Shown: positions 1 to 64,000, counted from the stretch's first letter. The stretch is DNA of 64,000 nt from Blastocystis sp. Blastoise (GCA_039096225.1 JBBPEB010000034.1:124001-188000); one strand, 5' to 3'. The notes: generated by a model not told the origin, from the sequence alone. Translations and numbers: made by a program.

Positions 1-1259
1 ACATCATTCGATAACACCATACCATTCGCTAAAGTTAAGTTAATTAACCGCGGGAATCCTTCACGAGTAGCATCATGCTTACATTTTAAAGGACCGCCTC
101 CAATCTTATTATATACACATTGTCCTATATAATAACGTTCGCGTGGAGCGGTGTCAAGTTGACGCATCAAATCCTTCATCTTCAAGCACGTGTCATCATC
201 CGTTAACATATAATAAGGTGTCGTTGCTTTTGCCGTTATAAATAGATCTTCAGCCATTAGTACTTTCATTGTTACATTCTGATAAGAATCTAATATATTA
301 GGAATAATCAAATCATTATACTCAGCTTGTTCTTTTAATAATGCCATTTTCAACTTCTCTGTATCTTTCATAGATAAAGCTACTACAAAATAAAACTTAT
401 AATTTCGATCAGATGTCGTCCATTGTCGCTGAGATGCAAACGTTTCACGAATTGCTTTTCGTACCCAAACTCCTAATGGCGGGCTTTTAACCATACCTAC
501 CATAAAATAAGGATTAAATAAATTTTCAATTTTATCAATATGGGGAAGAGAGAAGAAAGAGAAATGTTTATTACGAGGAAAAGAGTAATAACCAAGGCTA
601 TGACGACAATATTGTTGCTTCGATTGTATACTTACGTTATATGACATATATTCATATCTCTGATCACTCTTATCAGGTAAAGAATCAAAATATTCTTTTG
701 GTTCATCTATATTAATTTCTTCTAAAAAGTGATTATTTGTAGTATTCAACTTATAATACATCAATGAACCAAATGTATAATCTTTATATCGTTCTGGAAT
801 TTGGCTTGAAAGAGTTTCTTTGCTAGATTCGATAGTATCAATGTCTTTAGCAGTATCTTCCTGAATAGAATCATTCTCTTTTTGATCAGGAACAGTGTTT
901 TGATCTGTAATGGATTGAAGAACTTCTTCTTCGTTTTCTTTTTCAATATTATCATTAGTTTTTCCTATTCTCAGAGACTTCAGAGTCGATTTCTTCACAG
1001 CATTATATGCAGACATAACTTTCTTATTCGCAAAATCTAGAGAATAAAGTGGAATAGCTCCTGGCACTATAATATACAGAATAATTATATATACAACTAT
1101 ATCTTATATACTAATGACAGGTATAGAATGGTGAACTGAGTCAACAGTAACATGAAAACGAGTAACCAAGAGAGATTTCGAGATTATTACATGAGTTGTA
1201 TACATAAAAGTGATGACTGTCAATATAAATAAAAACAGAATTGTACTTCTACTTGCCAT
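1..1259 (-). CDS. GT31-family beta-1,3-galactosyltransferase-like type II membrane protein (multi-exon; 3' end runs off the window start)
   Basis: N-terminal signal anchor MASRSTILFLFILTVITFMY. Spliced exons give VRKAIRETF, DSYQNVTMK and YYMLTDDDTCL (DxD), matching the GT31 R-x-AIR-x-TW, DSY-x-NLT-x-K and KTDDD motifs. Confidence 0.8.
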
Positions 1260-2302
1260 TATTCCTAGATCCATCGAAATATAGAATAAATATTATTATT
1301 GAAAAACTCCATCGAAATTCTTTAAACTAAAGTCTGAAAATTACTGAAAACGCATTAAAAACCATTCATTCCCCTAAATTTTCATTTCATCTTTATTTTT
1401 CTGTATTTTGAGTCACTTCTATGATTATGTATAGGTAAAGTTTATATAAATGATATTTATTAGTAGTGAACGAATTGTTATGTTTGAATTCGTATTCATC
1501 TGGGGAATCGATGAAGTTTTGTATTCAATATAATTTTAATCACATATTAGGAATCATTGACTCTGTTTTTCCTATGCATAGTAGTATTTATTATACTTAT
1601 TTAATAGCCAATAATGATTTTAAAATTAATTATTGCTAATTTTTTTTGACATTTTGTTGTTTATAATCATTGAAATTCATAGTTATTGCTATTATCCTAT
1701 ATTGATGAAAATGAATAATTTGATATACATGTATATAGCTCATGTAGACTAGCTTATTCAAGCAAAATTCAACATAATTTATTTGTACTATTTAGTTAAT
1801 CTATCAAATTATTACATATTGATAATATGTTATTATATCGTTATTCTTATAAGAGTAGATAAAGTTATTATATTTATATTCAAAATAGAAACGAGAAGTT
1901 TAATCAAAAAATGATATATAAGATACGTATATATATCTTTGAAAAATGGATAAAAAAATCTTCTAATATAAGATTAGATTATGATATTTTATAAATAATT
2001 AGTAAACAAACAATATAGTTATAGAAAACATTACTTAAATACATATACAAAAGATATATAGAATAATGAGGAATAAAAAAGAGAAGAAAAAAATCACTTA
2101 AAGAATATCTATACAAAATAATAAAATATTTTTTTTAAATAGGAATAAGAAAATAAAAATGTATTCAAAAACATGAAACGATGTTCATATATAATTATAT
2201 ATAATTATATATAAATAAACGTATACAACTTGATGAAAAGACACAACAAGAAAAGAATAGATATATATATTTAAAAAGAATAATAAATAATTATTAATTT
2301 AT

Positions 2303-4316
2303 TTATAATTCAAATAAATCATCGAAAGCGGATTTTTTAGTTTTATTTACTTTCGTTTTGACAGGTTCAGCCTTGTTGACAGGAGCTGAATTGGTAGGAG
2401 CGGAAGTGAAATCTAAAGTAGATAAATCTGTTTCATCCATAAGGTCCATAGGTTCAGAAGTAGTAGCAGCAGAAGAAGAAGTATTACCAAAGAAATCAAG
2501 ACCTAATAAGTCATCTTCAACCTTCTTAGGCTTCTATAGATATAATGATATTATTATTATTATATATATATATATATAATGATAAATTGATATAGTGATA
2601 TTATTATTATATATATATAGAAAATGATAAATTGATATAATGATATTATTATATATATATAGAAAATGATAAATTGATATAATGATATTATTATTATATA
2701 TATATAGAAAATGATAAATGATACAGTTATATAGATAGATAAACTGATATAGATAAAAATAATAAGATAGATATAAAAAAGAGAGATACTATAAACAATA
2801 TATAATATATATATAAAATTATCTCTATTGAATACAATATGAAATAAAAAATAATAAACATATAAACATAATTAAAAAACGAATCTATTATATATAGATT
2901 AAAATGTATATATACAGTAGTAGTAGGTTTCTTGGAGGGTTTGACTTCAGGTTTAAATTCATCATCATTATTATCATCATCATCATCAAATAAACTGTTA
3001 GCAGCTTTCTTATTCATACGACTGGTAGTATTGGATTTCTTCTTATTGTCGGCTTTACGTGTAGTCCATTCATCATCGTCATCATCCCAAGAAGCGTTCT
3101 TATTGGCTTTTGGTTGGCGGGATTGGCGAACGTCTTCTTCATCATCACTATCAAATAAACTATTATTTGATTTCTTTACAGGTTTCTTTGTAGAAACAGC
3201 TATATCATCATCACTATCAAATAAACTGTCAGCGGCTTTAGAATTCTTAGAAGTGGAAGCTGTTTCATTCTTTAAACGGCGTCCAGTAGAACGAATACTA
3301 GGTCCCTCGTTACTAGAGATAGCGTCATTCTTACGAGAAATAGCCTTCTTAGCAGGCTTTTTCATTGGTTTATCATCATCTGACCAGTCGTCGTCATCTT
3401 TATCGGACCAATCATCGGATACTTTCTTTGTTTTACTATTCTTATAACTCTTATATAAAGAAGTGATTTGTTGAATCATATCATTCAAAGTTAATAAACG
3501 ACTTAAATAATTTTCATTACCGCCAGAAGTAGTTTCTCTTTCAATTAATCGTTGTAAACGTTTTGTATTTCCAATAGTCTCTTCTACAAAGGTCTATATA
3601 GATAGTATATAGATAGTATATATAATAATAATAATAAATATAATAAACATAATAAATATAATATCATATATAATAAAAAAATAATAATAATTATGATTAT
3701 AAACATAATATCTATATACCTTAATCTTTTCATTTTCGAATACATCATTTCCTTCATCCTCCTGCTTGGCTAATACTTTCTTTAATAATCTATAGGTCTC
3801 CTTAGGGTCAAAGGGACTACTAGGTTCAGCATAAGAAGAAGAAGAAGAAGAAGAACCTATTTATATAAAAGTAGAAGAAGATATATATATAAATATACTT
3901 CATTATTATCAATTAATTTAAACAAATAATATAATATTAATAACAATAATATTTTCAATTAAAATAAAATATAATATAATAATAATAACCATTGAAATAG
4001 AACACTACTATACTACTATATTATATATATAAATACTTGATTTATAAGAAGGAGAAGAAGCATAGTTGTTACTATAACTAGATTCGATACGTCTAGGAGG
4101 GTTTACGGGGGGTTCCCACTTCTCTTCCGACGAAGGAGCAGGTGCAAATCGAATGCCATCACGTTGCATATCTTGATATCCTTCAACGATAGTACGACCA
4201 CGACCCGATGACGCATAGGGCATAAAGGCATCCCCCCAACGACGTATCATGGCTTTGCAATCATTGGCTATATGCATATTATCAGCACCACCTGTCTGAC
4301 TACGATCCTATATATA

Positions 4317-4347
<31 letters not shown>

Positions 4348-4987: not shown

Positions 4988-5814
4988 TTTACTAATTATC
5001 CTTGTATTAATAACAATAATTGTAATATGATCACTTTCTTCAAAAAAAGGAAAAATGATATATATAAATCCATTTCTCAGGAAAAACCACAGTTTCCTCA
5101 GATTTCTTTAGAATATTCACGATTATTATCTTTCGCCTCAATAATACTTTTTTCATGATTTTTTTCTTTTTTTCTTCTTTTTTTCTGGCAACAGGTTTCT
5201 AGAAATTTGTTTTGAATAACATTATTCCTTTCATTTCTTCCATTTCAAACCAAATAACATTTAAATGTCCTTCGATACATTGTATCAAGTTCTCAAGCAT
5301 ATACTACATCTTTTAGAAAGAGTAAATAACATCAATTAAAAATAATTCTAAATTCATCAACATAATCTACTGTTGTTATCTGTTTATTTTATACTATTTT
5401 GTACATACATCATAAATATGCATTACATATTCAATAATTCTTCATAATCTCATTTTTTTACATGTAATTGTATCCATAATTGAGTTAATTCAAATCATAG
5501 CTTTATCAATTTATCTTTTAAAATATTCTATATTCATCTCATGCATTAATACAAATAATTCTATCCTATATAAAACAAAACGCAATAGTATTTAAATTTT
5601 CTTTCAATTAAGAACAGCTAAAAAGTTTCAAAAATAAAAATCCCAAAAAGTATTTAAAAAAAAATAAAATAATTATATGAAACAACAGAGAGAATTATCA
5701 TATTTAAAGTATCTAATAAATAATAAAATAAAAAAAAGAAACTTATAAAAAAGAAATCTTTCTTTAATAAGATAATGTATAAAATGAATTCAGTATATAT
5801 ATAAATAATTTGTT

Positions 5815-7530: not shown

Positions 7531-7749
7531 TTTCAATTTCTTTTTAAAAATTCAAAAACAGAAATAAAGGATTCCAATATAATAAAAAATGAATCTATTT
7601 AAAGAAATAAAAAACATAATGCCAAAAAATGATTAGCTTTGATGTCATTGATTTATTGGCTAATTTATTTGATCTAAGTCTGTCAGAACTGGTTCATCCA
7701 CTAATTCACTACCACTTCATTTCATCAATTACAAACAATTCTATAACAA

Positions 7750-10992: not shown

Positions 10993-11073
<81 letters not shown>

Positions 11074-14049: not shown

Positions 14050-15125
14050 TTAGTGAATGCCATAATACATACTGTTACTATCATTACTAGTGTCCTAGAG
14101 GAGAAGATAGAATAAGAAATATATAGGATAGTATATAGGGAAATAGAATAAGAAATGAGAAAAATAGTATAGAAGTATAGATATATAGATAGATATATAG
14201 ATATAAAGTATAAGTATATAAATAAGAATAAGAATGATAAGTTTAGAAGATATAAATGATAATAATAAGTATACTATATATATATATATACATATTCATC
14301 ATCTTCATCATCATCCACAGATCCGCTACTTTGAAATGCCATCGACGCGTAACTCTCAATACCTATATATACACAGGAAATAACCACGGAAATATATAAT
14401 TAAGGAAAAGAAATATTATATATATGTATATATATACCGAAATCGAAAATACTTAAATTTTTAGGAGGACTTCCACCTAACTATATATATATATATTTAG
14501 ATATATAATATGTATCTATATTCGATTTATAATGTATATATATATACACTCTTTTCTTCTATAGTAGCATGAGGATCGATATAATTCGAAAGGAATTCAG
14601 TCCATTTCTCTTTTAAAGAGTCTACGATTCCCGCGATTATTCCATGAGGTTCAGTGTCAATAGCTTTCTTTATATACTGTATCATATTAAATATAAACCC
14701 GAACTGATTATATTTTACACTACCATCAGCATTCTTATCATCACGTGCTTGAATACCCATGTCAATCAATTTTCCAATCAGATTATAGCGTTCAAATAGA
14801 TCCCTCACGAGTCCCTCATTTTGAGATTCAATAACAGCCTCGAAATAATTATAAACAATGAGATGGAGTGTGTCATTGTGAGCATAACGGAAAAACATAT
14901 CAAAGACAATATCATTCACGTGATTCTCGATGACGCATGTCATGACGCGCTCTTGTTTGAGGGTCAGGAGAGTTGATAAGAAAGTGATAATACCCGCACG
15001 AAGGATCCCCACACGTTCTACGGATCCCCCACGAGCTAACGGCAACTGGGACGAAAGAGGGAAACTATTTTCATTACTTGGAAGTACCTATATATATATT
15101 GTTATATATATATTTATATAATAGT

Positions 15126-15158
<33 letters not shown>

Positions 15159-17543
15159 TATATATAGATATATTATAGTTATATATAAATAGATATATAC
15201 AGGAGGAAGAGAGAGGTTCATCATAAGTACATTTATATTATCTAAATATACACTTAAAATACTCTGTACCTCGTCATATTCACTATTATTCTTTTGACTA
15301 AGTTGGTCTTTTATATATGTAGAACACAATTTAAGGCACGTGCTTAACTGTTGAGGAGACATGCGAATGCTAATTGTATTTAATTGATCGAAATCAATAC
15401 TATTATCTATATATATGGTATATATGGTATATATATAGGTATATATAGTTATATATACCTTCAGCAATAGTACCAAAACGATCATATATGTCTAATTCCA
15501 TCATATCCTCTATATATATAGATATATATATAACAATAATAACATATTTCTACTAATAATATTATATATATATATATATATATATACCTTGTTTATCTTT
15601 AGATTCAGTAGGAGATAAATGTGTATCAACTTCTAAAATATCCGCGGGAATATTACTGGTCTTTACATCATTAGCATTACTATATATAATATATATATAG
15701 TTATATATATAGTTATATATATATATATATATAGTTATATATACCTATTAGATTGAGCATATAATTGTGAAAGAATCATAATAATCTTTTGAGAAACAGT
15801 TTTATAACCGCGGGGAATAGATTCGTCAGTAATATCTAAATCAATACTTCTATATAATATAATATAATATAATATAATATAATATAATATAATATAATAT
15901 AATATAATATAATATAATATAATATAATATAATATAATATAATATAATATAATATAATATAATATAATATAATATAATATAATATAATATAATATAATAT
16001 AATATAATATAATATAATATAATATAATATAATATAATATAATATAATATTATATTATATTATATTATATTATATTATATTATATTATATTATATTATAT
16101 TATATTATATTATATTATATATATATAAATATATAAATACCTCGTTCTGCATCGAACATCACCATCTATGGGAATGGCATCTATAACGGGCTTCTAAAGA
16201 ATATATATATAAATATACATATATATATATATACAGGTCCTTCTTCTTCTATTTCTTCATCTGTACCTATATATATAATATATATAATATATATAATATA
16301 TATAATATATAACACATATACTAGCAATAAGATTGTTATTGACACAGAGGAATGTGAATGATTCGTACTGGTTAACGGCAGATTTAATGGCTGTGGAGAG
16401 TGTGACGGAGACTGCGTTGTCAGACATATCGAGGAAACGAAGACTGCGAATGGATTCCGAATTATCTTTAAAGGGTAGGTATATAGATTATTAATATATA
16501 TATTATTATTATTCTCCAAAAACATTTTAATTCTTATATACATAATAATAATAATTATTATTATTATTATATATATAAATACTAAAGAAATATAATAATT
16601 TGGTAGCTGCTTCATCGGTAAAGTTATTGGAACGTATATATAAGTTTTCTAATTTATGATATTCGTTAAGAAGATTAATAATAATATCAAATCCATTATC
16701 GCCAATATTATTACTATCTATATATAAGTCTTTTAATCGAATATCCGTAGAATGACAAATAGAAGAACAAATCTCATCAATACCCTCTGAATCTATTCTA
16801 TATATATTATTATTATGTTTATTATATAATATATATAAAGTATTATTTATGAACATATAATATATAAACTATAATTTATGAACATATAATAATAACATAA
16901 TATATATCATCAGTCAAGAAATATCCTTAATAATATATAATAAAATATAATAATAGTTCAAAAATGAAAAATATATATATCTATAATAACTTTTCAAAAT
17001 ATAAAATAAATTACACTATATATTATATACGAGGTACTATTAAGATTAAGAAGTGTAAGACCACTTCCTTGGGATAAAAGTTGAGCTATATGCATAGCAC
17101 CATTTGTACCAATAGAATTCTTACTAGACAGATAAGATAAAAATAGACAAAAAAGATTAAATTCAATATTGATTGTAAATACGCTAAAATCAATGATTTG
17201 ACTGACTTATTATCTTTTAACGTTTGACAAATAAAATTACATCCCTTTTCAGTAATCTATATAAATAGCATATAGCAAATAGAATCAAAACAAAACTTTT
17301 AAAGAAATTCAAACTAGAATATAAAAGAAAATACATTATTTCTCGATAGATCAATGCTTTTCACGTGTGTGGTATTCTTGAAACTATTACAAAATTGACT
17401 AATATCTGTATCGTTCAATTGATATCCATTCAACTGAACTTCTTTGAGTTCAGGATCATCTGACTCCATCTGTTCAAGAATGCTTTTAAAATAATGCTAC
17501 AAGAATTATGTATTTGATATTTTATAATCCTTACCTTATCCAT
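14050..17543 (-). CDS. RNI-like LRR protein fused to the C-terminal half of a SAPS/PPP6R domain (about 16 exons)
   Basis: 5' exons carry LRRs: LKEVQLNGYQLNDTDI, VKSIDLSRN, LKDLYIDSNNIGDNG, LENLYIRSNNFTDEAA, LRFLDMSDN. 3' exons are SAPS-like: VGILRAGIITFLSTLL, FDMFFRYAHNDTLHLIV, FGFIFNMIQYI, WTEFLSNYI, LGGSPP. All linking introns are GT-AG and phase-compatible. Confidence 0.7.
15853..16120. repeat. (AATAT)n followed by its reverse complement (ATATT)n, intronic
   Basis: Direct reading. The orientation switches at about 16050. Confidence 0.9.
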
Positions 17544-19117
17544 TTGTTTCTTTACTTATATTATAAATAATATATATCTCAGAATAACGATTAATTCGAA
17601 TAATCCAAGATGAAATTCCTAATAAAATTCTTATGTAGTTATGTTTTTATAATTCCCGTGAGAATTTCTTTGAAAATACTTGTTGCCGAAAAGAGATCCC
17701 TACAGTTTTTTTCAAAGGATCACCGAAAAAACACGATTTTCAAAAATATAATCCATTCTCCATTTGCTTGCAGAACTTACTTTAAAAGATGTCAAATGTG
17801 TTGTGCTATATATTAACCCTCTCTAGTCAGTGAGTAGTAATAAGGGACTCTCTTATTTATTTAGAATTTAAGTGATTTATGTTTTTGTCGATTAGGTTTG
17901 TTATTTCAAAGATTATTTTAATAATTTTTCATATTTCTATGATTCTGTCTCTATAATGAGAATCGTATTTATAATAAATTCTTAGTCTTCTCTTGAAATG
18001 AGCACGTTTCATTGTTTTTTTCATAGGAATGTCTTCAATGTGTAGAATATCAAATTATCAGTCCCTTTATTATAATCCTATTATATATATATTACATATT
18101 TGTATAGTATATTGATCATGTTTCTATTATATATTCTTTTCTATTATTTCTGGCAAACAATAATCATAATCATACATATACATATTCATCATTAAGAATA
18201 ATTATTATTTATAATAGCAACATATATTTTATTCAATATATTATATATATTATATAAATACTCTATATATAATCATTCTACTTTAGTATATATACCCATA
18301 TTTTTTATTTTGATATATATATCACTTTATTCATATAAACACCTTGTATATACGTATTTCATTTTTTTTTCAATAAACACTGCATTATCATATATAAAGT
18401 ATATTAAGACATTGATAGATATACACTCTCTACCAAACATAGTATTAAAATGTACTCTCAATATATATACTCTAGTGAGCCACTATACTACTATTCTATA
18501 TAACTAATACCAAGTATCACTCAACACATTTTATTCAATTATATTATCTATAAAAACTATATATATAACTCTTAATACCTCTAATGATTACAACTATAAT
18601 TATACTTATTTTGCTTATTGTATATCTCAAATTTTTTTGAGCATAATATAATTTAATGAATTCATTTATAATAATCCAAACACAATAGTATGTCAAATAT
18701 ATTCAAAGTAATCCAATTATCATGTTTATAAAACCTCTTCTTTTATATAATACAAATGTTACACACAATATAAACCTTTGGTTATGTCAATATACATTAA
18801 ATAAAAATAAGAGTAATCTCCTTGTCATTAAAAAAATTAATAATCATTTATGAAAATTTATAATTATAATTGAGTAAAATAAAAAAATGTAAAAATAAAT
18901 GAATATACTATGATAAATGAAAAAGACTGAGTAATGCCATATAATAATGCTCAAAAAAAGGAAAATAAAAAAAAGTTGTATCATAATGGTAGCCCTAGCA
19001 CTCCAACTGAATAAATGTGAACACAACAATAGATAGAAGAAATTATATTATGCAACAAGTGCAAAATCATCCCATATTGATTGTATTTGTCTTCTTAAAG
19101 AACCAATATAATATCGC

Positions 19118-24252: not shown

Positions 24253-24811
24253 TATAAAGAGGCTACATTTCGAACTGTCCGATGGCTCGATCGATGTTTA
24301 GATACTCATAAGAAAGGTCAACATAACCGCGGGAAATACTGCAATTCATATAATCTCCATCAGAACTCACTTGCTGACCAAGAAACTAATCAATCTGAAG
24401 ATCCAAATATTCACGGGGAATTATCAAAATTGAAGGAAGGTGAAGTAGTTCCCCAGAATTTATTTCCCATTGTTCAGGGATGGTTAGATACCGAAAAAGG
24501 AGGTCTTCGTGATATATGTATTCAAGAGTTTTTAAAGCGTGATGATCAGATTCCCGGGTACGCCATTGGCGGGCTCGCAGGGGGTGAAGATAAAGAGAGT
24601 TTCTGTAGAGTCGTATATATATAATATATATTATATTGCTATAATTATATATATATAACAATATATATAACTATATAACTATATAACTAGGTTGAGTTTT
24701 GTACTGCCCGCCTTCCTGAAGGTAAACCGCGCTACGTCATGGGGGTAGGCTATCCTCTCGATATCCTCGTCTGCAGCGCCTTAGGGGCCGATATGTATGT
24801 GATTACCGCGG

Positions 24812-24851
<40 letters not shown>

Positions 24852-25469
24852 TTTTATTACTTCATAATTCTATATATATATATAGGTACGATTGTGTTTA
24901 TCCTACTAGAACAGGTCGTTTCGGTAATGCCTTCATTCCCGCGGGAATGATGCGTCTGAAGTTGAATATATATAAAGATGACGAGCGTCCTATCGATGAG
25001 AATTGCCAATGTGATACATGCAAGCATTATTCACGAAGTATGTTGAATCACTTGTTGAAGGACGAGGCGTTAGGATCGATCCTCGTGACGCGTCATAATT
25101 TGTACTATATGATACACTTTACAAGAACTATGAGAGTATATATATATATATATATAATGTTTTAATTATTCTCCATATTTCTTCTTTTAGTCTAACCATA
25201 TATAAATATATAATATAAATATATAATATATAATAATATATATAATAATATATATAATATAAATATATAATATATAATAATATATATAATATAAATAGAT
25301 AATATATAATAATATATATAATCTATATATATAGCAAAGTATTATTGACGGAACATTCGATTCTTTCTGTCAGCAATTCATGATCAATTATTTCCCGGAT
25401 TATAACTATCCAGAATGGGCTGAAAAGTACCTGAAAATTGCTGGAATTGAATTAATTCATAAACATTAA
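23267..25469 (+). CDS. QTRT1: Queuine tRNA-ribosyltransferase catalytic subunit (eukaryotic TGT; multi-exon)
   Basis: [68 protein letters not shown] and the Zn site CQCDTC...HNL. Confidence 0.95.
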
Positions 25470-25832: not shown

Positions 25833-29636
<3,804 letters not shown>

Positions 29637-30168: not shown

Positions 30169-32090
<1,922 letters not shown>

Positions 32091-33747
32091 GATGTATTTC
32101 TCGTTTTATCTACTCAAACAAAGGATTAATAAACAAAAACAAATTATCTACTTTATGAAACAGAGGATACTTTTCAACAAATGTAAAAATTCAGTTTATA
32201 AACTAAAATAACCATGGAAATTCGTATCAAAATAAAGTCAGCCGGAAACAACCATCGACGTTTTCAGATGGAAAAAAAAAAAACACTTTTTAAAATAAGA
32301 ATATTCTTCTTGTTCTTTCATTTATACGGCGTGTTTGTTTGTTAAATACAAAAACAGACTCTTTATCTTATAAAATCCTATTTGAATAAATTCGGCAGGA
32401 ACAAGCATTCATTAAAACTGAATATTGTTGTGTAGATCACTCATTAAGGTACTTATTTTTCTGATATTATGGTTTGCCGTATCACTCTGTGCCCTTTGAA
32501 CAAGAACAAGAGATGAGAATGATATCAAGAAGCTATTATTGCCATGCAATTAGGACTACTTTTAATTCATGTCTCTTTGGCATTTGATTTATAAATTATC
32601 TAAGAATGCAGATATAATCTAAAGAAGATATATAATACCAGACAGGAATATATGAGTCTTTAAATACCAACATTCTAAGTAATTCGTCCTTGCAAGGTGT
32701 ATCTACAAAAGAAAATTATTTCTCTAAAAGACAAGAAGATGTATAAGATAATAAGATATATTTCATTTCATGAAAATTATTATTTTCGTACTATTGAAAA
32801 CTAGTAATGTCACATTCATAGTATATCTTTTTATACTAGTTGTAAAGTTGTGAGTATTATTAAGTTTTTCTTATTTAGTTTTTTTATAAAGATAATATAA
32901 CATAAATAGCTGTTTAGCAACTATTATGACACTTTTTATGATTTTTCTTTTTGTGGTTCTTAAAACTATAATAAATATAAACATATTATCTATAAATATT
33001 GAATTCATGTATGCATACTGAACAATAAAAACTTAACCACAAGATATGAACAAAGAAATGTTTTGTTTTAAGAAGTTTATTCCATTATGTTGTGTTCAAG
33101 GATAGTTATTATTTAAATTATTTAAAAGAACTTATTCACATAGGATTATTATATCAGTCGTCTATTCAGTTTTATTTCAAAAGAGTCGTCCAGGAAATAT
33201 AGTAATAAAAACTAGTTTTCAATTTTTTCTTTGCTATTAAGAAAAAACAGAGTCATTTTATGACATCAAATAGAGCATTGAATGACTCTAGATTAATGCA
33301 AATAACCCTAAATGTGAAGAACAGTTGACTTCTCAATACAACTTGAGAGTATGCATATCAGGAAGGTACTGGATTGCTTGTATTAGATCAGTTTATAAAA
33401 CAATAAAGCCATAAGTTACATGAATATATATATATATATATAAAACTCATATAAAAAAAGAGAAGAAAAAAACTAGAAAACGAAATAGTTTGAAAATAAC
33501 TCGAACTGACTCACTGACTTCCGTGAATATACTGAAATCTTTTAGAAGAATGAATCACTTGTTTTTATTTTATTTTATAAGTGATACATTGATTGATTAC
33601 TTATATAGAACTTAATAGATATTGATCCAAGTATGTGCTATACATATGATATACTTTCTTTTATTCTTTGCTGCCTCACAAATTGTTACAGTTTTTTTAA
33701 ATGTCCTCATAATCTATAATTTACATATATATAGAATAAAAAATAAA

Positions 33748-36700
33748 ATGGATAATAATCAAGAAAATAATCAAGATAAATGGACTGCAATTAATTCTAA
33801 TGGAGATTCCATTTCTAGTGATGGCTCCGAAAATCCTTCTCAAGCGAATACAGGTATATACATATATATAAGGAGAGAGAAAACTGTTTATTTGTGTATA
33901 AAATTTTTTTCCTTTTTAATTCATTATATTTATTTTAAAATTAAGAAATATGTACATTTATGGTGTTCTATATTCATTCTGATATTCAAATTTACTTTAT
34001 AGGGATCGATCAATCACAAGATGCCATAACAGATGATGTAAATCCACATCTTTTTCATCCAGTAGCTCCAATTCCATCAAACCCTGCTGCCGAGACTAGT
34101 GTCACAAGCATGTCCAATATATTTCCAAGTGTTTCAGGCGTTTTTAATCCACTTACAGAAAGTAAAATAAGTGTTTTAGAAACTATTATTGAAAATAAAA
34201 ATAACGTTCCTTCTACGAATGATATGAATAATAATATTCCTCCTCCTCCTATGAATGATATTAAAGATGATATTCCTCCTCCTCCTATGAATGATATGAA
34301 TGATAATATAGCTATTCCTCTTCCTCCTATGAATAATATGAATGATAATATTCCTCCTCCTATTAATGATATTAAAGATGATATTCCTCCTCCTCCTATG
34401 AATGGTATGAATAATAATATTCCTCCTCCTCCTATGAATAATATGAATGATGATATTCCTCCTCCTCCTATGAATAATATGAATGATAATATTCCTCCTC
34501 CTCCTATGAATAATATGAATAATAATATAGATATTCCTCCTCCTCCTATGAATAATATGAATAATAATATTCCTCCTCCTCCTATGAATGATATTAAAGA
34601 TGATATTCCTCCTCCTCCTATGAATAATATGAATGATACTGCTGGTATTCCGTCTGTAGATAGTATTGATACTTCAGGTCTTCCTTCTTTAAGTCCTATT
34701 GAGAACGATGATATACCAACAGTTGATGAAGTAATGAATGAACCAGATACTCCTGTTGCTCATAATATTGAAGATATAACTATTCCTCCTATAGGTAATA
34801 ATCTGCATATCTCTATGAATAATAATGAAAACGATTTTTATACTCCTGTTATTATTCCATCTATCACCAGCATACGCACTTCAAATAATTATAGCAACTC
34901 TTTAACAGAAAGTAAAACTAATATTTTACAAGATTATTTAGGTACCTTGACATCGCCTATCCCTTCAGAGTGCAATAATAGTATTACTATTCCTTCTCTA
35001 CCTAGTGAAAACTCTATTAATAGTATCACTTCTACTAGCGGAACTGAAAATATATCAGCTAATACTGATTCTATAGATAATAATAATACTAATTCTATAG
35101 ATAATAATAATAATACTGATTCTATAGATAATAATAACACTAATTCTATAGATAATAATAATAATACTATTCCAATAGATAATAATAATAATACTAATTC
35201 TATAGATAATAATAATGCTATTCCAATAGATAATAATACTATTATTCCTACTACTACTCCTACTACAAGTGTATTTCAAGTTGATAATATATTTCCTTTG
35301 AACTCTGTTATATTCTCTAAATTTAAAGATGAAGATATTAAGAATATAAAGCCTTTTATTGAAAACTCTAATCCTATGAATATCAATACTATGGAACCTC
35401 CTATAAATAACGATACTATTCCTCCTCTTCCTATGACTATTAATAATAATAATGATAATATTAATAGTAATAATAATACTATTCCTCCTCTTCCTATGAC
35501 TATTAATAATAATGATAATACTACTAATAATAATAATACTATTCCTCCTCTTCCTATTCCTTCTATGAATAATGCTAATAATAATAATGATAATAATAAT
35601 AATAATACTATTCCTAATCCTAATAATAATACTATTCTTCCTCCTCTTCATCCAATGGATAATCCATTCGCTCCTTTTCCTTCTTTTTCTTCTTTAGCAA
35701 ATATTAAAAGTTCTAACAATGATACTAATAATATACATCAAAATAACACGAATGAAAGTTCTCCTATGACATCTTCTTCTGGTAATACTTCATTAAATAT
35801 GCCTTCAAGTATACCTTCAAGTATACCTTCAAGTATACCTTCAAGTATACCCTCTATGCTATGTCTTGATAGTATTCAAGATCTTAGTGCTCAAGGTATA
35901 AATAAACAACTTAAGAATAACGTTGATATAAAAGAAATACCTACTAATATAAATGAATCAATTCCTTCTATTCCTAATGGACCTCTACTCTCTAATTCAC
36001 TTGCAAATAATAATAATAATAATGATAATGATAATTTAGTTAATGATATACCTGCCTTTAATTTATTATCTCCCATGGGAATGATGGCAGATCAGTTTAC
36101 TAACACTCATACTCTACCTATTCCTTCACCTATACCTAATCCTTCATATAATATACCTACTAATGTACCTACTAATATACCTACTAATGTACCTACTAAT
36201 ATACCTACTAATATACCTACTAATGTACCTACTAATATACCTACTAATATACCTACTAATATACCTACTAATATACCTACTAATATACCTACTAATATAC
36301 CTACTAATATACCTACTAATATACCTACTAATATACCTACTAATATACCTACTAATATACCTACTAATATACCTACTAATATACCTACTAATGTACCTAC
36401 TAATATACCTACTAATATACCTACTAATGTACCTACTAATATACCTACTAATATACCTACTAATATACCTACTAATATACCTACTAATGTACCTACTAAT
36501 ATACCTACTAATATACCTACTAATATACCTACTAATATACCTACTAATATACCTACTAACATACCTACTAATATACCTACTAATATACCTACTAATATAC
36601 CTACTAATATACCTACTAACATACCTACTAATATACCTACTGATGTACTTCATCCTTCTGGTAATATATATACATCTAATAATACTTCTACAACAATACC

Positions 36701-39349
36701 TCCTCCAATTTTTTCCAATCCATTTTCTAATTCTGCTATTGCTTCTTCATCATCTTCATCATCAATATCATCACCAATAAATGATCAATCTCTGAGTCAT
36801 TCTATACTTAATGAACAAGATGATATACAAAATCATTCACAATTTCCTCCACAAGTTAAATTGAATACATTACCAATTATACATAATGATAATCAAAATA
36901 AGAAGAAATTTATTCCACCTCCACCTATTCTTGATACAAAATTAGTATCTCTTCCTTATGATGATAATAATAATCAAACTAAGAACTCAAATATAAATAA
37001 TACAAAGCAAGCTGGAATTCCTTCTATTGGTCAAAGTATTCAACAAATAGAACCATCTCAAAATGATAATACTCAACAGATTCCTTCTTTTAGACAATAT
37101 ATAGATACTGAATCTAAGGAAATCTCTTTAAATACTCAAGGAACCAAATATATATATACTTCTCTATCTTCTCATGAAGAAGATAAGCATCAATATAATA
37201 ATAATAATGAATTACAACTTACAGAAAGTACTATATATCACCCAGATTGTGATTCTACACTTCATATGATTGGTCAATCATCACCGATAACCAATGATAT
37301 TCAACTGTTTCCTCCTAAACCAGATGACAATACACAACCAACTTTATCCGGATATAATGATGCTCATAATCCTATAAATATAAATGATGAACATATAAAG
37401 AATGATAATAAAAACAAACATATTGAGAGTACTATTAATCTTTATGACGATTCAAAAGAAGAAGGAAATAAAGAACAAAGTGATATAGTTAATGTTTCAA
37501 ATCCTAATGATCCTATTAATCAGTCTGAGTATAACTCAGATTCTAATGATATAAATAATAAAATATTTTCTATTGAAAGTAGTGTTATTGATAAGAATCC
37601 TCCTCGTTCTGTGAATATACCTAGTTCACCAATGCAAGAAATATCTGCTAGATCTCCGAATGATGAAAACAATCAAACTCAATATACTAGTGATGGTATA
37701 CCTACAAATGATGGTATACCTATAAATAGTATTATACCTACAAATAATATTATACCTACAAATGATGGTATACCTACAAATAATATTATACCTACAAATA
37801 ATATTATACCTACAAATAATATTATACCTACAAATGATCCTATACCTACAAATAATATTATACCTACAAATGATAGTAATACACCTCCTCAACCCTATTC
37901 TATACCTAATATGAACACAACACTAAAATTAATAGGCACTCTAAGTAATCCATGTGAAGAACCTGAGGGCCTTCAAACAACTACATTAGATGATTTTTAT
38001 GCTAGTCTTGAAAGAGATCAGCAAGAAAACAATTATTATCAACCTACATTATCGACACATTCTTATGATATTAATATAGGTGCTTCCCAAGGATCAATAA
38101 ATACTTCTTCTTATGACAATCAAGGTATATATGATCAAATCAATATACAACAACAACAAGTAAATAATGACTTTTATGGAGTAAGAAATCCTATGTATAC
38201 TAATGCTCTCTTCCAAGGACAAAATATAGATCAAACAATACAATATCCTAATAATCAAATCTATATGAATCCTGCTATTAATGAATCTATTCCTCCTCCT
38301 CCTCCATCTATTCTTAATATGAATGATATGAATAATATGAATAATATGAATAATATAAATAATAATATGAATAATAATATGAATAATATGAATAATATGA
38401 ATAATATGAATAATAATATAAATTATATGAATAATAATATGAATAATATGAATAATAATATAAATTATATGAATAATAATATGAATAATATGAATAATAT
38501 AAATAATATAAATCATGTAGATGTTTCATTTGATATGAATACTATTCCAGTACCTCCAGAACATCTCATTAATAGTCATTCTGCACCTCCTTCTCCTCCT
38601 GTTTCTCCTGCTCCTTCTTTTGTATATGAATCTCCTGCTCCTCTTTTCTCAGAAGAAAACATAATTAATCACAGAAACTTTAATAATGAAAATAACATAT
38701 CTAATATTCAAGAAGGAATGAATATGAATAATAATATGAATAATAATATGAATATTATTGACACTCAGGCGGCTACAAATCTACCTTATAATAATCAACA
38801 ACAACAATATAATCAACAATATAATCCTCAACAATATAATCCTCAACAATATAATCAACCTCAACCTCAACAACAACAATATAATCCTCAACAGTATAAT
38901 CAACCTCAACCTCAACAACAACAATATAATCCTCAACAATATAATCAACCTCAACCTCAACCTCAACCTCAACAACAACAATATAATCCTCAACAATATA
39001 GTCAACCTCAACAACAATATAGTCAACCTCAACAACAATATAGTCAACCTCAACAACAATATAGTCAACCTCAACAACAACAAATGCTATATGGTAATCA
39101 AACTTCCATGATGAATCCGTTAGCCATGCCAACTACAGGTACAGGGGTGAATCCAAATTATAATAATAATAATAATAATATGAATTCTTCATATATGTAT
39201 CCTTCTCCTAATCAACAACAATATAATTCTCCATATCCTTCACAACAGTATATATATATTAATAATAATATATAGGGTATAATATCTATATTTATTTTAT
39301 ATATTCTATTCTTTATATCTATAGGAGTAATTATTATGGATACTCATAA
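33748..39349 (+). CDS. About 1800-aa P/N/I/T-rich low-complexity protein (3 exons)
   Basis: 5.2-kb open middle exon (34003-39247) bounded by GT-AG introns. Repeats DIPPPPMNNM, IPTN, NIIPTN, YNPQQ and YSQPQQQ. No folded domain recognised. Confidence 0.8.
36150..36642 (+). repeat. Coding 12-bp minisatellite (ATACCTACTAAT)n encoding (I/V)PTN, about 40 copies
   Basis: Near-perfect tandem array with ATA/GTA and AAT/AAC variants. Confidence 0.95.
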
Positions 39350-43151: not shown

Positions 43152-46288
<3,137 letters not shown>

Positions 46289-46888
46289 CTTATATGAATC
46301 TTTATTTTAATAAAAGAAAACCACTAAGGAATCAAGTAATTCTTTTAAAAAACTCAGTTTTACTTTTTTTACAAAAATGAAAATTATATAAATTCTGACT
46401 TTATTTCATTAAAATACCACGGTTATTTCAGAGGACGAAATAACTAACATTGTCTAAAAAATGCATTAGAGTTTTTTAGTAATTTATTTTTTAATTTCTA
46501 TTTTCAAATTTTCAAATATTTTATTATAAATATTAATTGAAATAGATGTGAGTTAATAGGAGAGAATGGATAACAAAATAAAGGAAAAGAAGAACAAGAA
46601 ATTATTGAAACCCATTAAACATATAGTAATAAAAAATGTAAATGATAATATTGGAAAGAATACTCATGATCATGTAAAAAAAAATACATATTAATTTAAT
46701 ATATTCCTTTCCTATCTGATATATATATATATCAGACACAAAAAAAAACAATATAAAAAAGAAGAATAAAAAAAAAAGAATAATGAAACAAAAAAAAAAA
46801 GCAAGAATTTATTTATAAAATAAGTAGAAAGCAAGATTAATAATAACAGAATGGAGAAGAATACAGTAGTTACTCTATGTATATATAA

Positions 46889-47555
46889 TTATAATTCATT
46901 TCCAACAGTAACCCAGTTATTTCTCAAATTATTTCGACGCCCAAAAATCTCCATAAAATAACCTATATATAATATAATAATAATAAGTTTAATAAATAAT
47001 AATAATAATACTATATATATATATATAGTATTATAATAATATATATATATACCATTTGGAATAACTTGTTCAATAATTTTATAGAGTTCCATTGGTTTTT
47101 GACTCTGTCCTGTTCTCTCTGCCCATATAATGTCACTTAATAAATTCAATTTTGCAGCAGGAACTGAACCCTGTAGAATAAGATATATGTATAATCATAA
47201 ATAAAATAGTAAATATTATAATAAATTCTTCATAATTTTTATACAAATTTTTATACTAAATTTTTATTTATAAATAGAATAAAAAATAGAATAATAAAAT
47301 GTATTATATATAAATATTTATATATACTCTTTTTGCAATAAGACATGTTTCTTTACTATGTTGAAGATAATAACCGTGGGACTTGGCTAGTCTTCTACTT
47401 TTTGTACATTTCACCCAACTAATCTCATCAATATATCTATATATAAAAAGATATTTAATAAATAGTATATTCAAGATATTTAATAATATATACATTATAA
47501 TAACAGCAAATATAAAATATATTAAACATTAATGCTAATGATAAATATAATATAG

Positions 47556-47594
<39 letters not shown>

Positions 47595-47753
47595 TATTCA
47601 AATCCCCATTTATTCATCATATCAAAGGCTTGTCGGTATTTGGCGTTAATTACCCATATAAATAGAAGACCATTGGGAACCAAAATATTCACGGGAATCT
47701 CTTGAATTAAAGAATCATCTAATTGTTGATAAGCAATAGCTACCTATAGTTAT

Positions 47754-47809
<56 letters not shown>

Positions 47810-49487
47810 CATAATAATAATATATCTATATACTCCTCTAGTAGGGTTAGCACAGGAGAGTTGCCACGGGGGATCCATCATTAAACAATCGAAATACTGA
47901 TTCGTATATTGATGCTGTACTTCGCAGAGATGCTAAAACATAGAATATATAGAGTCATAATTATATAGATAATAAGTATAATAATACTAATAAATATAAT
48001 AATACTAATAATAAACATCAAACTAATAATAAAAAAAAACTAACAAATACCAATATAATCAACATATATAAATATAATTATTATAAAATACTATATATAT
48101 ACTTTAAAGTTAAATGTACGTATATCTGCATTAATAGGAATACTATATTGAGGAGGTTTCTCGATACTAAATAAATGACTTGTCTCTCTCATATCTATAT
48201 ATATAGAATTATAAAACATATATATAGAATCATACATATATATAGATATATAAAATATATATATATAGAATCATACAACATATTTATATAATCATAAAAT
48301 ATCTATATAAAATTATAAAACATATATATATGAATATTTAAAAAAAAAATAATACTAAATGATAATAAAAAATACATGGTTCTAATTCTGTAGCTGTAGA
48401 AGTATCGACAATCTTCTTCTTATTAGTCATAGCTTCTGTTAATATATTTATATTAATAGCTTTATCTAATAATTGATTATCTTTTAAAATCTTTCGCATC
48501 GAAGAGAAGACAGGATAAGGAGTCAAACCGATCTCCATACGATGATCATCATCATCTCGTTGCTATATAAAAATACATATAAACATGAATCTATTATGTT
48601 TTATTTTAAAAAAACGAACATTAGGCAATTAACATAAAAAACAATAATATTTATGTATATACTGGAGACACAACACCACGTTGTTCTTCATCATGAATTG
48701 AAGGAGAATTGTCTTCAAAAAGCAACTCCTGTTCTAATTTAAATATCTGATTCTGAATCTTCTTTGCTTGAAACTCTTTTGAAGATAATCCTTCATATTC
48801 ATATTCATCATTATCTATAAAAAATGATTTCAAAAACATGAACAACTTAGTTTAAGTCGAAAATACAAAAATATATATATTTAAAAAGCGAGGGAAATAA
48901 GACATAAATAGGGAGAAGACAAAAAAAAATAAAACTGGTTGATTGTCAAATATATATATAGATACCTTTATCATAATCAGAATGTCTGTTATATCGTCTG
49001 GGTGAATGGGAAGAACGAGCGGACTCGGGAGTAAAATCTTCTTCATCAGAATTATCACCGTCGTCATCAAAACCTATATAAATATATCAGTCATATATAA
49101 TTTGAAAATTTAATTAGAATGCATAGAATTACCTAAGAGATCTTCATTAATAAATTGACAATTGTCACAAATATATGTATCCATGAGTGCTGCTTGCTCT
49201 TCTGTAATTCCAACACTATATTGAATAATAAACATATAATTTGAAACGAATCTCTCTTACCATTCACAGTGATACCATGTGTCACAGTAATCACAACAGA
49301 TCATAGTTCCAGAGGGTGGACCCTTACAATAACAATACTGGCTCATCTTTCCACTGTCAAAATTCTATGTATACTAACCTCCTTGTATCAAAGAACTTGC
49401 AACTACTTTAATTTATTTTTCCACACAAAAAATTATAAATTCACACAATAACTACGATTATTTACTCATCTACCTACATATATCCAT
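46889..49487 (-). CDS. AMT1: MT-A70 family DNA N6-adenine methyltransferase of the AMT1/MTA1 clade with an N-terminal PHD finger (multi-exon; alternative start 49346)
   Basis: Spliced catalytic domain: SIPINADIRTFNF, FDCLMMDPPWQLSCANPTRGVAIAYQQLDD, FIWVINAKY, IDEISWVK, LAKSHGYYLQHSKETCLI, SDIIWAERTGQSQKP, EIFGRRNNLRNNWVTVGNEL*. N-terminal PHD: YCYCKGPPSGTMICCDYCDTWYHCECVGITEEQAALMDTYICDNC. Confidence 0.9.
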
Positions 49488-49965
49488 TATAATCGTGATT
49501 CTTAATTGTGACGCGGCTTTCAACCCACTTAAAAAAAGGCGGTCGTTTCTATATAACTAAAAACTATTTTTTATCATTCTCTGTAAATCAAATAAATTTA
49601 ATGTTTTTTAATGTAGAAAATGTAAGCGTATCACATTTACTCTTCTATTTCTTTCTTTCTATACGTTCTGAGATCTTTTGAGATTCTTTAAACAAGTTGT
49701 AGGAATACTTAAAAATTGATTTTCTTGTCTAAACTTGCTATTTATTCCAAATTTCCTATATAAACCATTCAAACATCATACTCTTTAAATTATAAAACCT
49801 TCACAATTCCAGAAACATTCAGTCATTTTCAATTCTTATTCTCATTTTTTATGAGTTTCTAGAATTCTCGTTTTCTTTTGGGTACAAATGAGAAAAAACC
49901 GCGATTCTCGCTAAACTGAACGTTTTTCTTTTCTTTTATAGTAAATTTCTTTTTAATATACTCAA

Positions 49966-50322: not shown

Positions 50323-50366
<44 letters not shown>

Positions 50367-53387: not shown

Positions 53388-53467
<80 letters not shown>

Positions 53468-55540
53468 GGATGTAGATAAGTTATATGAGGATATAGAGTC
53501 AACAGAAGAGAGCTATGGAAATAGTTATGTCACTTTTCAACAAACAGCTATTCTACAAGTATATTGTTCTATTATTATAGTTAGTTTTATATTATTATGT
53601 TATTTTGTTTTATTCATATTCTCTTTTTATTATATAGATATATATATGTATATATATATATATAGTTACAAAGTGAATTGAATTCGAGTAAATCGAAAAT
53701 TGCTCAACAGGAGGAACGTATTAAATCTTTAGAAGTATATATATATATATTAACTCTTTTATAATGACTATATATATTATATAATGTATATAATAATATG
53801 TTATTTCAATATAATTATAAAAAAAGCAAAGATTGATTTCATTCTGATTTCTTCATTACACGTGCACTTTTTCTATAGAATGTTCTTACAAACGTCGAAT
53901 TCTTTAAACAAAATGAAACTGTTCAACTGGATGATGTATATATATTATATTTATTTATTTATTTATTTATATATTTTATTATATTTATTTATTTATTTAT
54001 TAGATATATGTACATGTTATTTCTCTCTCTCTATATATATATATATATATAGAGTGTTTATCGTAATTTACATGTTGATTATTTCAAGTTATGTGAGATG
54101 CTTAAAGAGAAATGTTTATATATATCCACATTAGAGAAGAATGTAACTACACTCAAAGTAAACATTATATCTATTCTATTTATTATATGTATTCTATATA
54201 TTATATCTATTTTATTTATTATATTATATATATTATATCTATTATATTATATATATCCATATACAGAATAAATTAGCAGATATAACCGTGAATAAACGTC
54301 AACAAAAAGAAGTTATTCTTTCTCTTCAGCATCAACTCTCTCAGCATACCGCCACTATTGCTCTCATGCCCGCCACACCGAATGGAACACGTATATATAT
54401 ATATATTATTATTATATTTATTCTCTTTATCATCTTCTTCTTATTATATGTATACCTATACTTATTATTACTTACTATTATTATTTAATACTATTCTTTA
54501 TTATTATTATATGCATACATTCTCATCTTCTTTTACATGTTTCTTATTCCCGCGGTTATTTCTAGTTACTACAGAGTTCTCTATGTCACCTGACGTGAAT
54601 AGCGAGATTGTGTCTCTCTCAGAAGCCAATCAAATCGACAGAAATGGAACTTCTACACCTACTACCCCCTCTGTCACTATCCCTGCTACAGAAGACAATA
54701 ACCGCGGTAATTTCGCTGAATATGAACAATTACTTGTATATACTGTTTATTATTATTAATATATATATTATTATTATTATTATTATTATTATATAGGAAG
54801 AAAATAGAAGATTAAAATCTGAAATGAAACAATTAACTAGTGATCATATTAAGGTTAAGAATCAGTATTTAAGTTCAATAAAAGATATAGAAACAACTGA
54901 GAAACAGAATGAAGAATTAGAGAAGGATATCGAAACATATAAAGAGGAAAACAATGAACTGAATAAAGAAATGGATGATTATATGACAGCATTAACAAAT
55001 CATCAACAAACTATTAATGGAATTAGATCCTTGATTCAATCTCCTGATAATAAATTCACTACTAAAAAGAGTGACAAGACACCTCTTTTTATCGATGAAG
55101 ATACGAAGAATCAAATTAATAAGTCTATTGCTACTGCCAATGATATAAATCAATTTTTATATAATAAACTTCAATTCTATAAGGCAAAATATAATAGTAT
55201 ATGTCTTAATAAGCAGGATATTTCCACGGGAATTGAAGAAGATGATATGGAAGATAGACCCCATAATCTTGAATATATGAAATCTGTTCTTCTTAAATAT
55301 TTTTCATTCCCTGAAAAGAGTATTGACAGAACTCGTCTTCTCCCCGTGATTAAAGTACTCTATAATATGAATGATACAGAAATACAAGTATATATATATA
55401 TAATAATAATAGAAATAGTTATTATTATTATGGTTAATTATTATTATTCCGTTTAAATATTTATTCCCGTGATTATTTCTACAGACCCTTAATGGCGGGA
55501 ATCCACTTCCAAAACAATTCAACGTAGCTTTAGCTAGGTA

Positions 55541-55588
<48 letters not shown>

Positions 55589-56456: not shown

Positions 56457-61288
<4,832 letters not shown>

Positions 61289-62838
61289 ACATGTGATTTT
61301 AAAGAAAAAATTTCTTATATATAATACTTTCTATAGAGAATATTCGAATTTCCACGCAAAATCTGATTTATATATTAATATTATGTGAATGTTTTTTAAT
61401 TTATATTCATATTATTTATATATATCTATCCCAACATGTATTCATTTTCTTATATTACTATTCTTTTTATTGATTTCACTTCTGTATATATATTCATATA
61501 TATATGTATTTTTTGTAATGTTTAGCAACTATTCTGATTGTAGAAACACAAGTCACATAGTATTGCTTTTCTTTAAATATAATTATGTATTTAAATTCTA
61601 CTATTTTATTTCCTATTTTCTTTTTTTCTCTATATAAATTATATACTATTATATTTCTCTGTCTTTTTCTCTCAAGTACTTCTAGTAAGTTTTTATTATA
61701 TATTTTAGTTCTCTCTCTTGTATATTTATGGTTTATGATATATGTTTATATACAATATATATATTTAGTATATATATAATATAATATATAATATATGTAT
61801 TATATATAATATATATATACTTTTCTTTTGGTGTTATTATCCCCCTATCATTCATTTATGGTTTTCTTTTTTATCTTTTTATTTATCTTCTTTTCTTACT
61901 TAGTATTTTGTGTGATTTTTAATATATATATATATATAAATATCAGACGAATTATTCCTTTTTTTTCAATAATATATATATATTCTTTATCATAGAGTTA
62001 TATTCTTTATTTTTGTTCTTGCTATATATATATTTGATCTTCAATTTAATTGAATCAATCTATTTTTTGAATAATTATATATATATATGTATATATTGAA
62101 AAGTATTTCTCAGTTTTATTTTCTAATTTATTCTCAAATCTATTCAATCAATATTTATTTGTTTTTTATATAGCTTTATATAAATATTGGATTCTTAGTA
62201 TATATATTATTTTATATTAGGTTTTTATTTATTTTTATTTCGTTTTCTTTATGATATCATGTATTTTTTTTTTTTTTTTAATATTATAATTCTTTTTTGT
62301 TACTTATTCCTAACGTATTTTTTATTGTAATTTTTTTAAATTATTTTTTACAATAATATCATGCGTTGTACGCTTTGCTACTAATTCTAATTGTCATATT
62401 TCTTCATGATAATACAATAGTTTTCTTTTATGATTTAAATAATTGTTTTGTTTTCTTCCTATCAATGTTTGGAACTCGTTGTTGAAAGTTTTCATCAAAA
62501 TACGAAATACAAAAACATCGACTCTCGTCAATTCATGAGATAGTTTCATATTTTTATAAAGACATTACTTCTTAATGTATCATATTGACAACTAAATCAA
62601 TATAGTATGCTAGAAATCCGACAGTGAAGAATAATTAAGAATTTATCAAAATCCCAATAAAAAAGACTTCTCTTCATTTCATTTAAATCCCTTTGATGTG
62701 ATGTAATGTATCGAATCACCATGATTCCTCGTTACTTATCATTTAGTATTACTGAAATACATAAATTCTTTTTGTTGAAAGTGTTAATTCATCTGTCAAC
62801 TTGATATTTTTACTATTGATTACTATCATTAATCTTTT

Positions 62839-64000
62839 ATGAGTGAAGACATTAATAGAAATTCATTACAAGAAGTTAAATCAATAAATGAAGAACTTAT
62901 TCCTCAAAACAAAGAAAAAAATGGTCTTTCACTTGCTTCTTTAAATTCAGCTAAGAAGAAGGCTGTTGATTTTCTTGTGTCTAAATTTAAATCGAATGAG
63001 AATCAAAATCATGATAAAAACAAGGCTATATCAACAAATGATCTTGCTATTCATCCATCACTTCTTAGTAATTATCATCCACTACGATATAGTGATGGTG
63101 GTATATCATCATATTATAATCCATTATTAACTATATTTGATCGTGAAAAACAATCTGAGTGTCTCTCCACTGACGACACTCAGTCCATTCCTTCTCCTTG
63201 TACTAATCAACTAAAAAGTATTTATATGTATTATATGGTATTATATGTATAATATATTATTAATTTATTTTCATAGGATCTTTCTCTTCTTCTTCTTCTT
63301 CTTCATCTTCTTCTTCATCTTCATCTTCATCTTCATCATCTTTTTCATCTTCTTCTTCTTCATCTTCATCATCTTCATCTCCTTCTTCTCTACTGGAGTC
63401 AGAAAATAGTAATCATTATTTTTATTCTATCATTTTCTCTCTTCTATATATACATATATATAGATGACATAACTGATATTACTACAAAAGGAACTATGAA
63501 TACTCAAAATACTACATCAAACACACTTACTAAAACTATTAATATTCCTTCCTCCGTCGATGCTATTACTTCAACATTGAACACAATTAATTCAAATAAA
63601 TTACCACAAAATATTCATATTTATACTCAACAGAATATATATAATCACGGGAATCTATATACCACCACTATACAGCCTTCAGATTCCCGTGGGAAGGGCT
63701 CATTCCTAACTCCAGAGAAAAGTACAGATTCCCCAACAGAAAAATCAGATATCTATAATTCTATCGTTAATAAAGACAAAATAATCGCGGGAGATATTGA
63801 TGATATTGAGAAAGGAGTTAAAGAGATAGATATAAATACAAAAATGGAGCCCAAGTCATTATGTGAAAAGTTTTTTAATTATTTAAGTGACCAAAAGAAG
63901 TTATTTATAATTGTTCCTTTCATTTTATTACTTCTTATTCAGGTATATATCAATTATTATGATTTATAATTCTTTATGATTATTATTATTTTCCATACTA
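62839..64000 (+). CDS. 5' part of an unknown gene (Ser/Thr-rich N-terminus, first hydrophobic segment near 63900); runs off the window end
   Basis: Exons at 62839-, 63278- (poly-Ser) and 63464-, ending LFIIVPFILLLLIQ at a GT donor. Confidence 0.55.

Follow-up and report, generated by a model that had tools for sequence, protein, structure and literature searches.

Bacteria are known to carry motifs that recur throughout coding sequence to the detriment of the encoded proteins; HIP1 of the Cyanobacteria and the DNA uptake sequences are examples. HIP1 itself is an octamer of fixed sequence for which two cognate methylases exist; its individual sites are conserved, and it is not linked to promoters (PMC5861425, PMC4390886). 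Other systems that invite comparison are the COE (EBF/Collier) family, described as metazoan (PMC4512700), yeast Rap1 and other general regulatory factors, which are reported to restrict non-coding initiation (PMC6310685, PMC9481977), and the DNA methylation of other protists, in which AMT1 lays N6-methyladenine (6mA) over the first nucleosomes and gene-body 5-methylcytosine (5mC), where present, begins at the end of the 6mA (PMC12695648). In the literature we found neither a eukaryotic case of one dimer-type site at a comparable scale nor a description of the motif presented here, a 14-bp dyad from the genome of the tortoise Blastocystis sp. Blastoise (33.34 Mb, 34 contigs). Our starting point is a 64,000-bp stretch of this genome (JBBPEB010000034.1:124001-188000, hereafter the window, analysed at its full length), in which a first-pass annotation had reported a HIP1-like palindrome. 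The Hsp70 encoded in the window is 100% identical to a protein of this organism. The genome paper of the Russian-tortoise isolate Rus-B describes a diploid genome of 33.3 Mb and 23% GC with long introns and 12% low-complexity DNA, assembled from Nanopore reads and polished with Illumina data; it mentions neither palindromes nor methylation (PMC10690189).

Anatomy and abundance of the 14-bp dyad

The motif has the form ATWMYC-RY-GRKWAT, with ATTCCCGCGGGAAT as the best site. Its centre is AC/GT, GC or AT, flanked by a near-invariant C and G, and its common halves, read outward, are CGGGAAT, CGGTTAT, TGGGAAT, TGATTAT, CGATTAT and TGAATAT. All half-site types pair with all others, weak with weak included, with the control near zero; TGA-type halves pair with one another, and 13 of the 116 sites in our local sample (the window and 200 kb of contig 3, together 264 kb) are CATG-centred. 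The site scores are bimodal: below 12 bits the observed number equals that of the control, while above 12 bits it is far in excess. Orientation with respect to transcription is random (50 sense, 56 antisense). Because the half-sites mix freely, the strands are used equally and the score cut-off is sharp, the motif has the features expected if a homodimeric protein binds it above some threshold of affinity; the dimeric binder of the first-pass annotation is thereby supported as probable. Within the motif T-C-A and C-C-G covary (p=0.001), and half of all CGCG in the sample falls inside sites. Outside the 14 bp there is no information and the flanks of different sites are unrelated, so that a dispersed repeat or a transposon relic can be ruled out.

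The signal is genuine, large, genome-wide and apparently undescribed. YCRYGGGAAT occurs 3,994 times in the genome versus 106 in the control, ATAAYCRCGGGAAT 744 times versus 0 in the reversed control, and ATWMYCNNGGGAAT 1,908 times versus 18 in the control; scaling up from the local sample gives ~8,600 sites as a rough genome total, and our overall estimate is roughly 8,000. The window is a hot spot with ~4 times the genome average (31 matches to the 10-mer in 64 kb versus 120 per Mb genome-wide), and its top non-microsatellite 6-mer is CCGCGG (26 strand hits, 0.42 expected). The enrichment is thus not confined to the window, and it survives codon-aware nulls: coding sequence holds 80 sites, whereas synonymous shuffling leaves 11 +/- 3 and codon shuffling 2.7, and a local third-order Markov null gives 13 sites where 98 were observed. 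All 32 exact sites reported earlier are present (34 strand hits), as is the perfect 18-bp palindrome at 24933-24950; 12 of the 13 listed variants score as sites, that at 46415 being weak. We likewise find support for the earlier view of a DNA-level signal, independent of frame and strand and found in exons and introns alike. An assembly artefact is unlikely, since conserved enzymes read through the sites in frame and other organisms have a matching site. No Rfam match was found in 140 kb, and the upstream element of Blastocystis small nuclear RNA genes, AACCCRTAA (PMC8287931), is a different motif. The sites of the window are the following:

44..57: exonic site in a galactosyltransferase-like gene
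5113..5126: promoter-class site, ~130 bp upstream of a minus-strand start in our gene model
14380..15817: four body sites in a leucine-rich-repeat (LRR)/SAPS-domain gene, one intronic near a 3' splice site, three exonic
17652..17665: promoter-class site, ~190 bp upstream of the LRR/SAPS-domain gene
24323..24420: pair of exonic sites in the tRNA-guanine transglycosylase (TGT) gene, within a loop specific to Blastocystis; the orthologue L042 has neither
24802..24815: intronic site just inside the 5' splice site of a (TA)n intron of the TGT gene, absent from the orthologue
24933..24950: perfect 18-bp palindrome in the TGT gene, encoding FIPAGM (FVPSGL in the orthologue)
25995..28222: the ten sites of the densest cluster, within and next to a peptidase M49-like gene whose 5' end is uncertain
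30366..30420: MAP-kinase-like gene, two exonic sites close to its 3' end
32208..32221: promoter-class site, ~125 bp upstream of the kinase gene
36069..36082: single CATG-centred site in a 5-kb exon
43278..45650: minus-strand gene with five body sites, of which one is intronic
47370..47698: PHD-AMT1 (MT-A70) gene, two exonic sites in its catalytic domain
49489..49908: divergent AMT1/PHF5A-like promoter with two promoter-class sites, at -149 and -64
54282..55502: GRIP-domain gene with seven body sites, of which two are intronic
57368..60983: large plus-strand gene with eight body sites, of which two are intronic
63641..63794: group of three exonic sites that lie 800-950 bp past the start codon

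The TGT loop (24315-24450) is an insertion of ~43 residues relative to human QTRT1, which is present with a different sequence in another Blastocystis. The long exon (5.3 kb, 33960-39275) contains PT-rich tandem repeats (PF04886) and other low-complexity arrays.

Two positional classes and their cost to coding DNA

Gene anatomy was taken from a hidden Markov model (HMM) gene finder trained on the local sample. On these models 88 of the 116 sites are exonic, 13 intronic and 15 intergenic, and about 85% lie inside genes. The first-pass annotation had placed the motif in exons and introns; some sites, including its site at 17652, are upstream of start codons on our models. These belong to a promoter class, 60-200 bp ahead of the start codon, which is absent from that annotation and, together with its conservation in other Blastocystis, is new here: the interval from -250 to -80 (12.7 kb in total) contains 9 sites versus 6 in 64 kb of other intergenic DNA (7.6-fold, p=2e-4), and the genes concerned are Rab7-like, Ded1-like, RPA1, AMT1 and kinase genes.

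Sites in gene bodies avoid the 5' end. Over the first 600 bp exonic density is 1.5-1.9 per 10 kb, compared with 9-18 further on (~7-fold, p=7e-7), so that the earlier statement that genic copies begin at least about 0.6 kb past start codons holds as a strong depletion, not as an absolute rule. Few or no sites occur in the seven genes with the strongest codon bias; the absence noted previously from particular genes is confirmed for the most codon-biased ones, while our broader model adds a weak site in Mps1 (12055) and the one in the 5-kb exon (36069). Also empty or nearly empty is the repeat-rich multicopy block of contig 3 (~430-480 kb), which comprises multicopy lineage-specific genes and a PIF1/Helitron-like fragment. 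Exons of this block have a CpG observed/expected ratio of 0.3-0.5 versus 0.6-0.85 elsewhere, though DNMT2 is the only cytosine methylase found (see below).

Sites cluster by gene, with 30% of neighbours closer than 500 bp versus 10% expected. Exonic sites avoid exon edges, while the intronic ones lie at most 24 nt from an exon. Most of these fall in the pyrimidine tract, their pyrimidine-rich arm being on the sense strand (9 of 11 are 11-24 nt from a 3' splice site, in a single orientation), which is where, and how oriented, the fewest mutations create a site. Genes denser in (TA)n/(TAA)n tracts are also denser in sites (rho 0.50), and 14 tract-poor genes carry one site; within genes, sites avoid the 30 bp beside an AT tract (1 versus 12.8) and favour distances of 60-120 bp from it (34 versus 21). 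As a separate observation, TATATA density in genes of the window rises, in parallel with the motif, from 8 per kb over the initial 300 bp to ~28 per kb past 600 bp.

The sites override the strong AT codon bias and change residues in conserved enzymes. Rare codons make up 60% of codons inside sites versus 9.5% outside; in addition to the FIPAGM segment of TGT, two of the three body sites of RPA1 accompany amino-acid differences (T to V and E to H).

Conservation in relatives and candidate binders

In a GC-rich relative lineage of Blastocystis a strong site is found ~125 bp upstream of RPA1, the Blastoise site being at -179, while all three RPA1 body sites are absent. None of the four TGT sites is kept in the orthologue, and overall 0 of 7 body sites are kept in relatives that are ~80% identical in protein and GC-rich. 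In three of four more distant mammal-type subtypes the Rab gene has a site 54-84 bp upstream (locus L052, a duplicate of ST4, was not counted as independent), and the poly(A) polymerase promoter has weaker sites in two of them; elsewhere in mammal-type subtypes strong sites occur at ~0.25 per 10 kb versus 4.4 in Blastoise. A search with the Ded1 exon returned no homologue at what was too strict a cut-off. The simplest history would be an old promoter element followed by a lineage-specific spread into gene bodies.

The GC-rich lineage (L033, L043-L050; 52-57% GC, short introns) is itself noteworthy: it is much closer to Blastoise than the common subtypes are (Hsp70 90% and the RPA1 exon 82% identical) and has the same RPS29-Hsp70-ubiquitin-like gene order, which amounts to a large shift in GC content and introns between close lineages when compared with the 23%-GC tortoise isolate. 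Other observations from this comparison are a cluster of five or six motif-like sites in the proline-rich exon of an RRM gene of a mammal-type subtype (L053, 17630-17910) and a conserved heat-shock-element-like sequence, GAATGTTCYAGAA, upstream of the mitochondrial-type Hsp70 in three subtypes (L030, L034, L037).

Profile searches for DNA-binding domains and methylases were made exon by exon, spliced models being joined in the local statistics only. The COE DNA-binding domain (PF16422) and the LAG1 DNA-binding domain of CSL (PF09271) gave no match in the genome, the control being silent in both cases. Genes of the E2F/DP family are present, about six in the genome (L022-L028), two of them DP-like and one E2F7/8-like as judged by eye. 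E2F/DP sites have an obligatory central CG in an SSCGSS core; the CpG-free sites argue against these proteins, and canonical E2F sites were not seen in the sampled promoters. The monomeric CSL site, CGTGGGAA, is unlike the motif, whose second arm is constrained. The resemblance to E2F or CSL sites remarked upon in the first-pass annotation therefore does not identify the binder.

Among C5 methylases (PF00145) DNMT2 is the only match, and no N6/N4 methylase (PF01555) was found, with a positive control; the Dam family was not searched and intron-split genes could escape both searches. The window contains, on the minus strand at 46889-49346, an intact gene with a PHD finger and an MT-A70 domain with the DPPW motif, closest to ciliate MTA1/AMT1; the motif is present there at one promoter position and two body positions. 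With such an AMT1-type gene intact, the genome probably has 6mA at ApT. It is suggestive only that the motif would occupy the same downstream zone as the gene-body 5mC of other protists.

Competing explanations and comparison with known systems

The motif is very probably the site of a DNA-binding protein. This putative homodimer would recognize the half-site YGRKWAT on either side of a 2-bp R-Y centre, and in its older role it would act close to the promoters of housekeeping genes throughout Blastocystis, at sites 50-200 bp upstream. In the tortoise lineage, which is AT-rich and has expanded introns, new copies would have arisen one at a time by point mutation, and selection, which we infer in preference to drive, would retain them inside long housekeeping genes past the first ~600 bp. 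Their likely role there would be to position nucleosomes and to block false transcription starts beside (TA)n/(TAA)n intron tracts. That the sites are multiplied promoter-factor sites kept by selection as organisers of gene-body chromatin is a proposition we regard as evenly balanced; the chromatin-organising function, taken by itself, is tentative and falls somewhat short of an even chance. We further speculate, with considerable doubt, that the co-opted promoter factor provides a hard-wired, sequence-encoded gene-body mark beyond the 5' domain of 6mA and histone H3 lysine 4 trimethylation, which would prevent ApT-rich (TA)n introns from serving as promoters, with a cost visible in the proteome, in a genome that has an AMT1-type 6mA gene but in which a gene-body cytosine methylase was not found.

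Several points weigh against the proposed chromatin role and its history. The positional statistics derive from our own HMM gene models over 264 kb, or 0.8% of the genome; site number has no monotonic link to codon bias (rho 0.13); there is no spacing period at 60-255 bp and none at the nucleosome scale; and gene class, length, expression and annotation error are all confounders of the association with AT tracts. Searches for CG-1 (as in CAMTA), RFX, KilA-N, COE and CSL domains gave no match, with three controls silent and exon-split genes liable to be missed. Promoter conservation rests on position in a few genes, GC-rich subtypes have no overall enrichment (7 sites versus 4 expected), one mammal-type subtype has a weak exonic cluster of the motif, and body sites may have been lost in the relatives, given the large differences in GC content. 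Finally, the general regulatory factors of yeast are usually scarce in coding DNA.

Neutral accumulation, in which the bound factor shields its sites from GC-to-AT decay or favours them in gene conversion and the body sites have no function, is unlikely. It would agree with the turnover of body sites, with one RPA1 site that keeps GC-rich codons partly common to the GC-rich relative, and with the placement of intronic sites in the C-rich 3' tract in the orientation needing fewest changes. It would however require ~7-fold or more protection, leaves the 5' exclusion unexplained, and has to accommodate several sites that come with amino-acid changes. About equally unlikely is the same protein as an activator, the body sites being intragenic enhancers whose number raises the output of housekeeping genes: the conserved promoter use suggests an activator, the clustering by gene is consistent with one, and exonic factor sites have been reported in plants (PMC6790085), yet both the promoter-near 600 bp and the genes with the strongest codon bias are avoided by the motif.

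A chromosome-level anchor, serving condensin or cohesin loading or stopping, replication licensing or recombination in the manner of bacterial parS, matS or Noc sites, is distinctly improbable. The dyad geometry, the thousands of dispersed, frame-blind copies and what we take to be a likeness to the Noc site would suit it, whereas the distribution follows gene anatomy (promoter window and 5' exclusion) and leaves the repeat-rich block of contig 3 nearly empty.

We consider highly improbable the HIP1-like ratchet offered as an alternative in the first-pass annotation, in which a sequence-specific DNA methylase and methyl-directed repair drive the motif and CpG deamination produces its variants. 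The CCGCGG core and the share of CGCG found inside sites speak for it, but in the families searched (PF00145 and PF01555, with intron-split genes liable to be missed) no methylase beyond DNMT2 was found, and the site is graded over 14 bp instead of being a fixed 6-8-mer, with the covariation described above. Moreover, since symmetric CGCG methylation should yield TGCG/CGCA as readily as CACG/CGTG, deamination does not explain the 53 CACG/CGTG versus 3 TGCG/CGCA centres among the first 100 genome hits, nor the common CpG-free CATG-centred sites and the near-fixed outer C and G. An RNA-level signal (a splicing or stability element, or a short hairpin) is equally improbable, since the placement of intronic sites near the 3' splice site in one orientation is offset by exonic sites that have no strand bias and avoid exon edges and by the occurrence of the motif upstream of genes.

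The motif offers a test case for how an extreme-AT genome with microsatellite-filled introns keeps its gene bodies from firing, and for how far non-coding demands bend protein sequence; it also gives Blastocystis, which is the commonest eukaryote of the gut and has promoters that have hardly been characterized, a candidate for a conserved promoter element.

Among known systems, HIP1, and with it the bacterial DNA uptake sequences, is alike in being an over-represented palindrome that occurs in all frames and in non-coding DNA and is avoided in highly expressed genes (PMC5861425). It differs in being a fixed short palindrome (GCGATCGC or an equivalent octamer) with periodic spacing, whereas the present dyad is graded, with variable centre and arms, and is found in a eukaryote, linked to promoters and lacking a 60-255 bp period, with body sites not kept in relatives and a cognate methylase not found. 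The EBF/Collier consensus ATTCCCNNGGGAAT agrees letter for letter with the best site, in the same 6-2-6 dimer geometry (PMC4512700); COE proteins are metazoan and none was found here, in a search with a silent control, the centre is R-Y and many arms are ATAAYC, and the match is probably convergence. Yeast Rap1, Reb1 and Abf1 are likewise promoter-proximal at housekeeping genes and can restrict non-coding initiation; the motif shares this position and its conservation, seen in few genes, but its binder is putative and most of its sites are inside genes. Gene-body cytosine methylation, including the linker methylation by Dnmt5 of prasinophytes, also occupies the bodies of long, moderately used genes from the end of the 5' 6mA zone (PMC12695648); here there is a fixed sequence instead of a mark, DNMT2 as the only DNMT found, and no nucleosome-scale period. 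Exonic transcription-factor sites ("duons") similarly constrain codons, whereas here a single motif in thousands of copies overrides the AT codon bias and changes residues in conserved enzymes. Altogether, the motif has an effect on coding DNA like that of HIP1 or the uptake sequences, is a member of neither group, and looks like a transcription-factor site.

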